Shown: positions 47,513-56,882, counted from the first letter of the whole stretch. The stretch is DNA of 63,892 nt, filler included, from Reticulomyxa filosa (GCA_000512085.1; 24 parts of 24 records of this genome joined end to end with filler, not necessarily neighbours in it); one strand, 5' to 3'. A program made the numbers and translations. Notes: generated by a model not told the origin, from the letters alone.

Positions 47513-50500
47513 NNNNNNNNNNNNNNNNNNNNNNNNNNNNNNNNNNNNNNNNNNNNTTAATTAATTAANNNNNNNNNNNNNNNNNNNNNNNNNNNNNNNN
47601 NNNNNNNNNNNNCTTTACTCACTCTAAATAAACAAATTTTTTTTTTTAAAAAAAAAGGAGCTTCAAACTTTTTTTTTTAAAAAAATTTATTTGCTTGTGT
47701 TTGAATGGATGGATTGAACTATTGGGGGGAGAATATAGATTATGCAATTCTGGAAAAAAATAAATGGTTTGGACACTCGAAACCCTAAAGACATTTGAAA
47801 GTGAGGTATCATTTGGCTCCAGGAACAAAAAGAAGTTTAAAATGACTATTTATTTATCGTTGGAACAGAATGCCGCTACGTTGGAATTAACGGCTAACTA
47901 GATGCACATGGCCCCTCAAATCTCAAAATTATGAAAAAAAACAACTAATTTTAGCATTTTGAAAACATTTTATTAATCAAAAATGACCATACGTTCTCCT
48001 TATACCAACTTAGAACAACATAAATCTGTTGGGAATTCAATTGTTGATGATAATTTTGAGTACATTTGTAGAGACACAAATTGGGAAATAAACATCACTG
48101 TATTAGAAATGATTTCATATTATCACATTCCAGCAATAAAAAACTTTACTTCAAAACTAAAAATATTTTTTTCGATAAAAAGGGTGGTATTCACATAATA
48201 TTGATATTATGTATGCAATCAATCGAAAAAATAGTAAAGAAAAATAAACATATAAAATTAAGTTCTATTGATCATGAGAAATTTTGATATCAGAAATGTT
48301 AGCAAACAGTTTTGTTGTCATTATCCAAGCACCAACAACAAAAATTCCCTTTTTCTTTGAAAAAGAAAAACGTCAAGTCCAGGAATACTTACGAATGGCT
48401 CGTGAGGCAACGATAGATAAGAAAAATTTGGACTATTTGGATCATCACAGAACATTTTACATATATGACATGACAGACAATCTCCAGTATTGGATGATTG
48501 TTGTTAAAAAAGAGTATGTTGCGAAAACGGCGGATTGCCATCACTTCAGTTTTTCGAAATTACAAATCACAACATCGGACCAACTTGTTTGGATACTGCC
48601 AAATCGATGATGGTTCATACAATGGACAATAAACACAGCAAATTCTCATTTGATTTTTAGAGGAAAGCATTAAGGCAAAAACGAAAGGTAGAACAGATAA
48701 TTTTGGAATGATCTCGTTTTTTTCAAAGAAAAAGGGAAATATTGTTTTAAAGATGGTTCGACCATATTATTAATTTTTTTTTTTTTATTTAAAAAAAAAA
48801 AAATGTATGGTAAAATAATGGACACTATTATTGTGGTGTCATGATTTGCACCACAATTACAAAAAATGTTTTGCTGAATGGGAAATTTCCAGAAACCCAT
48901 ACGTGCGATATTTATCCGATCGAAGTTGATTGTGTGTGTTGGAATTCAAATGCGCCAAGATGTTCACTTTCACGAAAAAGGACTTTTAAGGCGCCTTATG
49001 CTGGAGTCACTGAAACTTGTATTTGATTTACATAGTGCACATAAGCACATGCTACCACAAACACCTGGAGTAGCCACAACATACAAAAGTAATGCCAAGG
49101 ACTTAAATCTTTTAATGTTTTTCTATTATTCTGTTATACGTATTCTTGTTATCTACTACCCGAAATCTTTTTTTACCAGGAATAGTGGTAAAATCAATTA
49201 CTATTTTCACACATTCTTATGACCTCGCTTTTAGATTTAAAATATTAAAGTTGAACAAATTATGATCATCGTAAAAAAAATTTCTAAAGACATCAAATGA
49301 GCTGGAGGAGAACATTAAAGAAATACCAAAACAATTACAATTCGCACACAAAGACAAAAATTTTTCATCAAACACTTGCGATCAAAAATGTCATCAATTT
49401 GTCGTTGTTTGCACTTCGTTTCAATGTTCTTACTGGCACCGCAACCACCAAAGCCACTTTCTCGATAAAAAGGTATCGTATTCTTTGGAGATCTATGTTT
49501 TATACATGAGTATTGACTATACATATTTCAATCAAATTATAAAAAAAAACAACATTATAACATGGAATATAGGTTGCGCATGTAATCACCATAACCACCA
49601 GCTCACCACTTTCAATTTGTTCATCATGAGCCACACTACACGATATNNNNNNNNNNNNNNNNNNNNNNNNNNNNNNNNNNNNNNNNNNNNTTAATTAATT
49701 AANNNNNNNNNNNNNNNNNNNNNNNNNNNNNNNNNNNNNNNNNNNNATATCCCTTAACAGAAGTGGTCAAATACGATTATTCATATTTTCAAAGGAAAAA
49801 GAAAGAAAAAGTAAATAAAGAACAATACCAAGGTGACTACCTCCGTATTTATTTCTCCTTTCAAAAAATAGATACAACAACTATTAAAACTATTATTCAA
49901 AGCCAAAAGCCGCATTTGAAAGTAATTGTATCTTTTTCTGCTGCAGAAAAAGTACAACAAGTTTTAAAACTAATCTTAAATCAGATTTGTTTTAAAATTA
50001 AAGAATCAGAAAAAGAAAAAGAAAGAGAAACAATTCTCGCCATTATTACAAATTTTAACCGTGACCTTTTATAAAAGTTCAAAAGGGACTAAAAAAGAAA
50101 AACTTACTTTGTTTTAAAACGTTTTGTTTGCCTGTTGTTTCAAGTATTACACAAACCTTCGAACCAACTTTGTGGTAGGTTGTGTGTAACAGTTTGTACA
50201 AAAAAAGTAAGGCATTAGCCTTAAGCTTTTAACAAAACATTTGTTCTGTTAAAAGTTATCAGTTTCTTGTTATCTGATCTGTTGTTTGTTATTTGTTGTT
50301 TGTTGTTTATTATTATTCCTACATTTTTCACATAAACTTGTTTTTGCCAGTCTGTCGTAGAGTCGAAGACGAGGGCCTAACAGAAAACAAGAAATAAAGT
50401 TTTTTTGCACATCGGTAAATCGCAAAAGAAAATGTCTAAAAATGGAAATTCTGCTGGAAAAGGTACTTCTCCCCAAGTGCCATCTTTGGAACCAATGATT

Positions 50501-53500
50501 ACGGATAAAGAAAATTTGGAAAACAAAGAAAGCAACAAAGTTGCTTCAAAAAATGGAGAAACTGGAGATACTCCAAAAGTTGGAGATTCCTCAAAAAATT
50601 CCACTCCAAAACTTAATCCAAAAAATATTAGTCCCACTGTAGGTAGAGAGGAGGAAAGTAACAAGGAAAAAGATGTCCCATTTAAGCCATTAACTGTAGA
50701 TGTACCGATGACAGATGTAAGTAAAGCATTAGCAATAGAAGAAGAAGAAATAAAGAAAAATAAAGAAGAAGAAGAAAAGAAAAAAATAAAAAAATATCGT
50801 ATATAAAAAGTATTGTTGTTTCTATTGTAAAAATACAAGATTCCATACAAGATCTTGATCATGTTGTAGAAGAAATCTATCAGTCCTCAGATGAAATTGC
50901 CGATGATTCCATATCTTCATTTGAAGAAGAACAAACACTTGCTTCAAAAGCTGTAGCCCGGAAAGAGCCTTTCCTTATGCTTACTGTGGAATTCATGTTC
51001 TCGCATTCATACTTGGAAATTCTTGGATTGGTTAGACAAGAAGAAAAAAGAGTTCAAGTTGCAGTTGATGTATTGAATAAATACATGATGAAATGTAAAG
51101 ATACATATGTTGAAAAACTTCAAAGCATTTCACAACAGCAGAATGCATTACAGAAAACAGAAAGTGACAGCGTCCGGAAACAGATAAATGTTGCAATTAC
51201 TGGGGATCAAAATATCATCACGTGGTTAAAAAAATTGGAAATTGCCATAAATAGTATTCGTATAAAATATAAGTCGCTTCAAGATTGTTTATATTTTATT
51301 ATACAATATTTGTTTCTGCAATATTCTTGTATTGATTCCTTGGAAAAAGTGAAAAGAAATAAACATTTGGACAAAAAGGTCTTAGAAAAAACATATCAAG
51401 ATATTCAAATGCATCTCAAAGGAGCTGTTGACAATTACATGACATTTCAAAAAGAAATAAATGTTCTTGAAAAAGTCATTTCAAGTAAAGGCCATCCTTC
51501 CATTGTCGCGTTGTCGAAAGAGTTCGAGAAAGTTAACTTTACCGTGTTATCCCAACAAGATGTTGCCCATAATCAATACCAAAAGAATTTTCGTGTTACT
51601 CAAGATCATATAGACCATGTAAAATTTGATGTAAAAATCTTTGAAAACATTTTACAATCAATAAAAAATGTATTGCCAAAAATCACCGAAATTCAGAGAA
51701 TAATTTTTAAAGAAAATATTTGGAAAAAATTTAAACTTGCGGAATGGGAAAAAGAATTGTCCGACATAGAACAATTTCCGGAACTTATAGAAAATTTTGG
51801 AGAAGATCCAGGATTTGTAAGTAAAAAAGAAACTGGGTTTGTGGATAGCGAATTCCGTGTACTGGAATTACCAATTAATGCAAAAATTACAATGTATAAT
51901 CCTAAAAAAGATTTTAAGAAATCGTTGGTGTTATATTGCCAGATTTCTCTTCGCCATCCATTTGTCCTTTCGCTATGGATTTTGTCAACGGACATGTTCA
52001 GATGCTAATTTGTCGCCTTATCCCAATAAGTCCAACTATCTCTCTTTCGGAAGTAATACGATTACTAAAAATTTTGCAAAATGGAACGTCACAATTTTGG
52101 CATGTTCGTGTCGAATTGGAAAGTGGATACAATGTTATTTATTTTCGGACTACAGAAGCAAAACCTGTATCTGAATGGAAAGTATATGCAAATCAAGAAT
52201 ACTCATTGTTTCGATACACCTATCCAAAAGTTCGGGACGAACGTATTGAAAAACGTATTTATTTTTTGCGACACATATTACATGATGATGGTCGTGGGCT
52301 ATCTATTGTTGGCCCAATAAAATCCAAAGATGACATGTCGTTAAATGCATATTATGTAAAAGAAACAAAATTCCTTTCGTATATATTGTGTAACAAAGAT
52401 AAAGAAAGAGATATTGTTTCAAGTATTCAGGAAAAAATGGAATTTATTCACAATGCACACTTATTGGAAGAAGGGCAAGAAGAAAATGACTTGTTTGATA
52501 AATGTAGTTACTGGAAGAATATTTGCCTTGTTTATCTCTTAAAGTAGATAAAATGTTTAATGTGCCCATGCCACACATGACTGGAAAACTTGGCTTTATC
52601 ACACCTATTGTTGCGCGAAAAAACATTTCAAAAAGGAAAAGTATCGCCAAAGAAACAACACGGAAAGTGTTTGACCTGCGAGACTCCGATGAAGAAATGT
52701 TTGATAAAGAGGAAAAAGCGCAGTGGAAGAAGAAAAAGAGCCTACCACAGATTTGCTCTCGTTTTCTCAAACAGAAACAGAAAACGCTACAAGAAAGGAA
52801 AGCTATCTTGAATCTCCAAATGTTCCTAAAACTACGTCCCTTCAAGGGTCTATTTCTAGACCTGATCCGAAACCTCATTCTGCGCTCAAAACGTACTTGC
52901 CATTTCCGGAAACTACTGGTTTAACGAGTAAACAGCTTCGAGAAAATGAAAGAGAAAAGCCAGGCGCCGAAGATCATGGGCTAATACTCTACAAGATGAT
53001 GACGATATATTAAGCATTGGCTCAAATAAAAGCCATAAGAGTCAAAAAAGTGATGAGTATATCTGGAAAGATGATCCAAACAACCCCAATGTTCGGCTTG
53101 GTTATCATAAACAAATGCACCAAATGTCAAAAAAAGAAAAAGAACAAAAACAAAATCAACAAGATCAAAAAGATGAAGACGATATAATTATTGCGGAATC
53201 CCTATATGAAGGAGATCTCGAAGAAGATTATAGCAATCCACATATGGACAATTCCTTGGAAGAGATAAAACAATATTATCAGGTTGCTTTGGAAAACCAA
53301 AAGGCAAACGTTGCTATTGTTACCTCATTACAAGAGTTTCGAGCAATGTGGTATAATCGTCTTGCTGGCATGGAAGAAGCAGATATTACAAATCGGCTCA
53401 TAGAGCTTCAAAAGTTTGTGGCTTACTCCGTTCGTGACACAGAAAATGATATCATCAATCAAGGATTAACAGATTTTGAAAGTGAACAAAAAATATATAC

Positions 53501-56703: not shown

Positions 56704-56857
56704 ATAAAAACAAATACATTAAAGTTAAAATTCTTTCTATTATTAGATTAAATATGCATTTATAAATTAAAAAAAATAAACAAAAAACATCAAACAGTCT
56801 AAATAATTCTCGTTAGTAAAAAAAACTCAAAAAAAATGTTCTAATTAAAATTTTTAG

Positions 56858-56882
56858 CTTAGGGCTTAGGGCTTAGGGCTTA
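56858..56882 (+). repeat. Telomere-like tandem repeat (CTTAGGG)3.5 at the contig end
   Basis: CTTAGGG CTTAGGG CTTAGGG CTTA runs into the spacer, with the G-rich strand 5'->3' towards the end. Confidence 0.65.

Follow-up and report, generated by a model that had tools for sequence, protein, structure and literature searches.

The reverse transcriptases (RTs) of Penelope-like elements (PLEs) are the closest relatives of telomerase, and the diversity of these elements in protists is poorly sampled. Features of PLEs include a DKG motif and, in the N-terminal part, the motifs N1-N3, as well as an upstream open reading frame, ORF1 (PMC8557442). Endonuclease-deficient (EN-) members prime on chromosome ends, with telomeric repeats then being added to their 5' end (PMC3846280), and they carry reverse-complement telomeric stretches at their 3' end (PMC3846280, PMC8557442). 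Here, we analysed a candidate element of this kind on an AT-rich piece (positions 49747-56882; 22-40% GC) of a window of 63,892 nucleotides, that is, the whole stretch of DNA under study, filler included. The piece very probably harbors a retroelement remnant of some class. More specifically, we moderately favor the reading that it is a dead, 3'-truncated copy of a two-gene, PLE-like retrotransposon family, in which ORF1 is followed by the RT, from Reticulomyxa filosa or a close relative.

When the 97-amino acid (aa) middle piece of the RT was searched with HMMER against 1.84 billion protein representatives, only two proteins matched (P0001, E 2.8e-23; P0002, E 2.8e-13), both from R. filosa assembly GCA_000512085.1, where they are deposited as ETO09072.1 ('RING zinc finger-containing protein') and ETO07158.1 (hypothetical protein RFI_30234). 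Read alongside the contigs bearing these relatives, hereafter L001 and L002, the element comprises:

50432-55241, plus strand: remnant of a giant ORF1, from an ATG at 50432 to a TAA at 55239-55241, about 1600 codons (chain of open stretches; homology to L001 and L002)
50432-53740, plus strand: N-terminal two-thirds of ORF1, variable in sequence and without recognisable domains
53934-54101, plus strand: three gag-like CCHC zinc knuckles, read from the translation
54147-54560, plus strand: cysteine-based phosphatase domain with a dual-specificity phosphatase/protein tyrosine phosphatase (DSP/PTP) fold (Pfam and PDB profile), including the first of the two nonsense codons below
54207-54209, plus strand: in-frame TAA within the phosphatase domain, with conserved residues on both sides; Ser at this position in L001 and L002
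54560-54920, plus strand: acidic Ser/Glu/Lys-rich linker of ORF1 (translation; colinear with L001 and L002)
54924-54980, plus strand: CCCH zinc finger, CX5CX7CX3H, read from the translation and conserved in L001 and L002
55071-55073, plus strand: another in-frame TAA, located 3' of the CCCH finger in ORF1's basic tail; the frame continues into a tail resembling those of L001 and L002
55237-55975, plus strand: RT remnant, N-terminal domain and fingers to just past motif A (homologues, RT profiles)

The order of knuckles, phosphatase, CCCH finger and RT is repeated on both relatives' contigs, and ORF1 and RT stand together in three of three copies, those of L001 and L002 included. L001 is colinear with window positions 53900-55930, with identities of 66-72% (nucleotide) and 53-65% (protein). 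Its own truncated RT is followed, out of order, by a fragment (2540-3275) with 40-55% protein identity to window positions 51160-51897, i.e. to the N-terminal part of ORF1. Given this match, the otherwise orphan N-terminal part belongs to the repeated unit; the arrangement itself could be a deleted tandem. L002 encodes an intact ORF1 of at least 1305 aa (ETO07157.1, annotated as 'Kid domain containing protein') with three knuckles, phosphatase, acidic linker, CCCH finger and basic tail, and, about 0.4 kb downstream, an RT whose motif B reads QGDNDSP and whose motif C is a frame-shifted YLDD, with additional blocks besides. Since this ORF1 counterpart is intact, the remnant in the window represents one ORF. 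The N-terminal halves of the window and L002 ORF1s share no similarity, and the family ORF1 can be described as a protein of ~1300-1600 aa with a fast-evolving N-terminal part ahead of a conserved module. A rhizarian host, as proposed in the original prediction, fits with all known relatives being from R. filosa. Word-based protein searches found no homologue for ORF1 positions 50809-52005 and nothing beyond P0002 for either the phosphatase ORF (54210-55070) or the RT profile (A1), all three blanks being limited by the tool's length window. Conserved RT blocks retrieved no relative from JGI metagenomes and IMG/VR, and an exact look-up of four window ORFs returned no annotated gene.

The GenBank models ETO09072.1 (L001 62-3006), ETO07157.1 (L002 1-3930) and ETO07158.1 (L002 4453-5545) overlie copies of the retroelement, with the ETO09072.1 model splicing over frameshifts and fusing the RT fragment to the out-of-order ORF1 fragment. 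At least these three R. filosa proteins, filed as host proteins, are pieces of the element.

The coding nature of the locus is evident from its open stretches. On the plus strand of 50381-55975, 11 of them reach at least 100 aa (414, 287, 252, 209, 141, 138, 133, 117, 111, 103 and 101 aa), compared with 0.09 on average when the same bases were shuffled 300 times; in these shuffles the longest stretch averaged 79 aa and the longest of all measured 149 aa. The region therefore is present or recent coding sequence. The frames follow one another in the order 2,1,0,2,1,0,2,0,0,0 along the ORF1 chain and 1,0,2 in the RT part. About seven frame changes fall 5' of position 53808 and two nonsense codons 3' of it, the last third of the ORF1 chain being a single frame broken just by the two TAA codons. 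In the RT, comparison with the relatives identified TGA 55507-55509 as an in-frame nonsense codon and thereby ruled out our first reading of the frame chain, which had taken this site for a frameshift; two frameshifts, near 55550 and near 55795, both lie in A-runs. Carrying three nonsense codons as well as about nine frame changes, some in homopolymers, and without RT motifs B-E, the window copy is dead and was cut after motif A, just as had been predicted. The prediction had also described an intron-free chain that frameshifts and single stops would join into roughly 1500 aa or more; chain and length both hold (about 1600 codons), and the statement that the breaks lie 'often' in A-runs is true in part: of the seven frame changes located N-terminally in ORF1, only three overlap homopolymer runs. 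Splicing as the cause of the frame changes was ruled out: neither of the two GTAAGT sites within the chain marks an intron restoring the frames, the one at 51817 sits in codons conserved with L001, and nonsense codons occur amid conserved residues. No introns mend the chain, then, while the claimed contrast with intron-rich host genes can be drawn with one neighbor showing GTAAGT...TAG introns.

Comparison of the window copy with L001 gave a pS (proportion of synonymous differences) of 0.70 and a pN (nonsynonymous) of 0.29, as opposed to pS/pN values of 0.39/0.37 and 0.28/0.38 in the wrong-frame controls. The synonymous excess was present in every block, namely the N-terminal part of ORF1, knuckles plus phosphatase, CCCH finger and RT, and the RT N-terminal part was under purifying selection with a pN of 0.21-0.27. 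As pS greatly exceeds pN, the proteins encoded by the two lineages were functional during their divergence. Each of the three sampled copies is nonetheless damaged: L001 bears frameshifts, one of them in the phosphatase core, and the L002 RT has several, next to its intact ORF1. This pattern of decay is that of diverged transposon subfamilies, a transposon graveyard. Besides, we observed that the L002 ORF1 (13-3930) is open over 1305 codons of AT-rich sequence, whereas the adjacent RT (4331-5815) requires four or more frame changes; either ORF1 has been preserved in its own right, or homopolymer sequencing errors account for the RT frameshifts.

As for the domains of ORF1, no Pfam family matched 50432-53740. 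Of the three knuckles, the first has the canonical retroviral spacing (CX2CX4HX4C) and the other two read CX2CX3HX4C; the region is 65% identical to L001 and 47% to L002 with Cys/His positions kept in both, and Pfam zf-CCHC_5 matched it weakly (E 0.26). The phosphatase carries the P-loop HCAAGLHRTG at 54399-54428, whose CX5R loop is kept in three of three copies (HCISGIHRTG in L002). Pfam matches were obtained for DSPc (E 5.4e-6, under its cut-off) and Y_phosphatase3 (24.8 bits versus a cut-off of 22.2), and a three-copy profile matched ShufPTP (E 3e-8) and an archaeal PTP (1e-7) in the PDB, hits of this group ranging from E 3e-8 to 4e-7, along with many DSPs and, weakly, the baculovirus polynucleotide 5'-phosphatase 1yn9 (E 0.048). 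The CCCH finger found weak Pfam CCCH matches in the relatives. The predicted gag-like ORF1 with enzymatic cargo is thus borne out, the knuckles being present and the cargo being a cysteine-based DSP/PTP phosphatase. In the HMMER alignment, a Ser in all copies faces the general-acid Asp of the closest structure, and five residues upstream an Asp is found in L002 and an Asn in the window copy and L001. Cysteine-phosphatase RNA 5'-phosphatases do without a general acid. With no general-acid Asp evident in the phosphatase, a function on RNA ends is therefore possible for it.

The RT remnant corresponds to the N-terminal third of an RT, with the motif A Asp at 55835-55837, and contains all four RT-like strings that had been quoted. 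RT profiles match within 55261-55978, where such matches had been anticipated: RVT_1 hit the motif A piece (55784-55975) at E 0.002 and 18.3 bits, under the cut-off of 29.6, as did 18 PADLOC RT models, all over motif A (best E 8.7e-5), and the homologue P0002 passed the RVT_1 gathering cut-off (30.2 versus 29.6 bits; PADLOC RT model E 7.9e-7). Homology to the L002 RT ends at ~55965, just ahead of motif B, so the catalytic half is gone; the catalytic YxDD (motif C) that had been suggested as a target is missing from the window copy and present as the frame-shifted YLDD of L002. Searching the RT profile and P0002 against PDB sequences gave chance matches only, and AlphaFold2 on the RT N-terminal alignment reached a pLDDT (predicted local distance difference test) of 39.5.

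Two observations concern the edges of the RT. At its start, the RT frame opens 2 nt ahead of the ORF1 stop (55237-55241) in the A-rich run GAGTAAAAAAAGG and lacks its own ATG, and about 0.4 kb found between ORF1 and RT in L001 are absent from the window. This reflects either a deletion or a frameshift-type junction, as mentioned for some PLE ORF1s (PMC8557442). At its end, the break falls within ~50 bp of the same site, just past motif A, in both copies of this subfamily, the window (~55965) and L001 (~2492), with unrelated sequence following it, which may be coincidence, a fragile site or the mark of an internally deleted, non-autonomous variant.

To which class of retroelements does this family belong? 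The assignment to PLEs, which we consider somewhat better than moderately supported, draws on motif order, language-model neighbors and the PLE consensus. The RT blocks follow the PLE order: a DKG-like block, RPI(I/V)S, KNS, motif A, motif B, YLDD, FLD and a thumb-like block. When the L001 RT N-terminal ORF was compared by language model with the Atlas, 24 of 30 named neighbors carried DUF8422, some together with RVT_1; these DUF8422 neighbors, from arthropods, rotifers, nematodes and chordates, scored 0.95 with 180-181 features in common, and the window RT piece retrieved the same families with a score of 0.94.

Several points, however, weigh against a mobile PLE. The DKG-like block reads DHN in the window and L001 and DND in L002, albeit with its D-to-Y spacing maintained; other PLE clades have altered versions too, namely DKA in Naiad, DKT in Hydra and DK in Chlamys (PMC8557442). 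In phmmer, the RT piece matched no PLE RT at E <=0.001. The hallmarks that the original prediction had suggested looking for were not found: no Rfam hammerhead ribozyme at E <=1 in the window piece, L001 or L002, no pseudo-long terminal repeats (pseudo-LTRs) or long direct or inverted repeats in the window by repeat finder, and no GIY-YIG match at E <=10 in the open stretches on either side of the RT in L001 and L002. Canonical hammerheads are likewise lacking from Naiad and Chlamys PLEs (PMC8557442). As to the meaning of DUF8422, we found no paper. Past motif C, the L002 RT, together with its thumb, presumably resembles the PLE consensus, a likeness that we treat as a lead only. The A-run frameshifts could be sequencing errors, which the nonsense codons could not, and with three copies known, and neither termini nor target-site duplications seen, mobility is itself inferred. 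All in all, the label 'Penelope-like' is probable for the motif order and the DUF8422/RVT_1 neighbors, while its altered DKG and missing hallmarks speak against it.

The same evidence bears on the alternative that the family is a non-PLE retroelement, i.e. a divergent non-LTR element or a member of an unclassified RT lineage, whose PLE-like motifs would be generic RT fingers. CCHC knuckles are typical of ORF1 proteins of long interspersed nuclear elements (LINEs), and their presence here would suit such an origin, as would the RPIxS and D..F motifs that are common to many RT classes, the fact that all HMM matches were to generic RT models, and the absence of DKG, hammerhead, pseudo-LTR and GIY-YIG. 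Yet no endonuclease of the apurinic/apyrimidinic (AP) or any other type was detected to either side of the RT in L001 and L002, the Atlas neighbors are nearly all DUF8422 clusters instead of the abundant LINE RT clusters, and both the domain ahead of motif 1 and the layout past motif C fit PLEs. We deem a non-PLE origin unlikely.

Less probable still, and in our view decidedly so, is that we are dealing with a host multigene family with a domesticated RT fragment, of which the window copy would be an ordinary, immobile pseudogene paralogue. In its favor, the window and L001 both retain just the RT N-terminal part with breaks ~50 bp apart, this part was under the purifying selection described above, L002 combines an intact ORF1 with a frameshifted RT, neither termini, target duplications nor high copy number have been shown, and GenBank names the relatives as 'RING zinc finger-containing' and 'Kid domain' host proteins. 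On the other hand, the RT core of L002 is complete, YLDD included, an RT preceded by gag-like knuckles is the signature of a retroelement, and three of three copies are damaged, with L001 rearranged such that an ORF1 fragment comes after the RT fragment. Moreover, the chain is devoid of introns and the neighboring gene has them, and no relatives were found outside R. filosa. Nor is ORF1 a single-copy spliced host gene.

The window copy sits between two host genes, and the features that flank it are the following:

49748-50074, plus strand: tail of an upstream host-like gene outside the element, a 108-aa open stretch to a TAA, open from the edge of the piece
50280-50308, plus strand: (TGTTGTT)4 microsatellite, non-coding, ~120 bp upstream of the ORF1 start (Tandem Repeats Finder, TRF)
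56092-56703, plus strand: host gene with short GTAAGT...TAG introns (at least two) and a WWE domain, outside the element, between it and the array
56857-56882, plus strand: CTTAGGG array, 3.7 perfect copies of the 7-mer (TRF, 100% matches; register GCTTAGG = CTTAGGG)

The microsatellite may lie near the 5' boundary of the element, an end that neither relative's contig reaches; some PLE clades prefer microsatellites for insertion (PMC8557442). The upstream gene tail weakly matches the PARP14 RRM-like Pfam family (E 0.029), and the WWE exon (56174-56338) exceeds its Pfam cut-off (E 1.8e-5, 25.5 versus 21.1 bits). Taken together, the two hint, very tentatively, at an element placed within or beside a PARP-related gene cluster. 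Downstream, the frame of the 121-aa ORF at 56338-56703 differs from that of the simplest splice past the second intron.

The array was indeed found where the original prediction had put it, at the very end of the piece and 0.88 kb past the RT remnant, with the G-rich strand pointing outward (5'-3') as it would at a genuine chromosome end, and the 3' side of the element does face it, opposite to the orientation of Athena. Judged from this arrangement, the array may be a telomere, though an unproven one. We found no literature on the telomere repeat of R. filosa. Among JGI metagenomes, at least 120 contigs, with GC contents of 29-68%, contained (CTTAGGG)4, mostly internally; at locus ends it lay 12 times in either orientation, and no locus was related to the element, so this survey is uninformative on telomere identity. 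The sense strand of the element holds no reverse-complement telomeric stretch, one isolated CCCTAA inside ORF1 aside, and neither the L001 nor the L002 contig contains a CTTAGGG array. With the WWE gene in between and the orientation wrong for such a link, the predicted telomere association is unsupported, and the closeness of the element to the terminal repeat is probably incidental. The original proposal, in which an EN- and telomere-associated PLE akin to Athena, Coprina or the Terminons had been attached to a chromosome end, could appeal to the undetected endonuclease, to a terminal G-rich 7-mer array in telomere orientation 0.9 kb away, and to the upstream ORF1 of Athena and enzymatic cargo of Terminons (PMC8557442), but it appears very unlikely given the intron-bearing WWE host gene, a 3' side facing the array where such elements receive additions at the 5' end (PMC3846280), the lack of hammerhead and of reverse-complement telomeric stretches on the sense strand, the lack of such arrays in L001 and L002, and a 7-mer that is not established as the host telomere and counts only 3.7 units.

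Returning to the favored reading of a two-gene, PLE-like family, its active members would be transcribed, and ORF1 would use its knuckles and CCCH finger to bind, coat or chaperone the RNA, which the RT would copy into DNA at a new site. No endonuclease that could serve in priming was detected. The phosphatase might act on RNA 5' phosphates, comparable to the baculovirus and capping-enzyme cysteine phosphatases, or on host phosphoproteins; both are guesses. We found no paper linking PLEs to Reticulomyxa or Rhizaria as hosts, none pairing 'Penelope-like' with 'phosphatase domain', nothing on R. filosa retroelements and no account of a retroelement whose ORF1 contains a cysteine phosphatase. The family might thus be an undescribed, deep-branching PLE clade, so far restricted to Foraminifera and the first from Rhizaria, characterized by a knuckle/CCCH/phosphatase ORF1 and endonuclease-free priming, a possibility that we put forward only tentatively. 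While the copy in the window is just an ordinary dead fragment, a foraminiferal, endonuclease-less lineage with two ORFs would, if true, form a new branch near the root of PLEs and telomerase, and a cysteine phosphatase in a retroelement ORF1 would offer a new accessory activity that can be tested.

Among known systems, EN- PLEs (Athena, Coprina) and Terminons share with the present family the lack of a recognisable endonuclease and a separate upstream ORF1 (PMC8557442). Terminons also carry enzymatic cargo (PMC8557442), and EN- PLEs are found in protists and have an RT N-terminal domain ahead of motif 1 (PMC8557442), as seen here. In contrast to them, the family is devoid of a hammerhead and of reverse-complement telomeric repeats, is oriented oppositely to the array, has DHN or DND in place of DKG, and encodes CCHC knuckles, a cysteine phosphatase and a CCCH finger in its ORF1. 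With canonical endonuclease-bearing PLEs (Penelope/Poseidon, Neptune, Nematis), it has in common the conserved block order and the occurrence of permuted or partial copies such as L001, and the language-model neighbors of its RT are animal DUF8422/RVT_1 clusters; those elements, however, encode GIY-YIG at the C-terminus of their one ORF and bear pseudo-LTRs as well as hammerheads, none of which was detected in the family. LINEs with a CCHC-knuckle ORF1 resemble it in their two-ORF layout, with a nucleic acid-binding knuckle ORF1 upstream of the RT, but the family differs by the absence of an AP-type or restriction enzyme-like endonuclease, by an ORF1 of ~1300-1600 aa with an enzyme domain and by a PLE-like RT N-terminal region. 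Finally, small cysteine PTP/DSP phosphatases, including the atypical DSPs of plants and fungi, share the HCX5R(T)G P-loop and the domain length with the ORF1 domain, which here is embedded in a retroelement ORF1 and has a Ser in place of the general-acid Asp.

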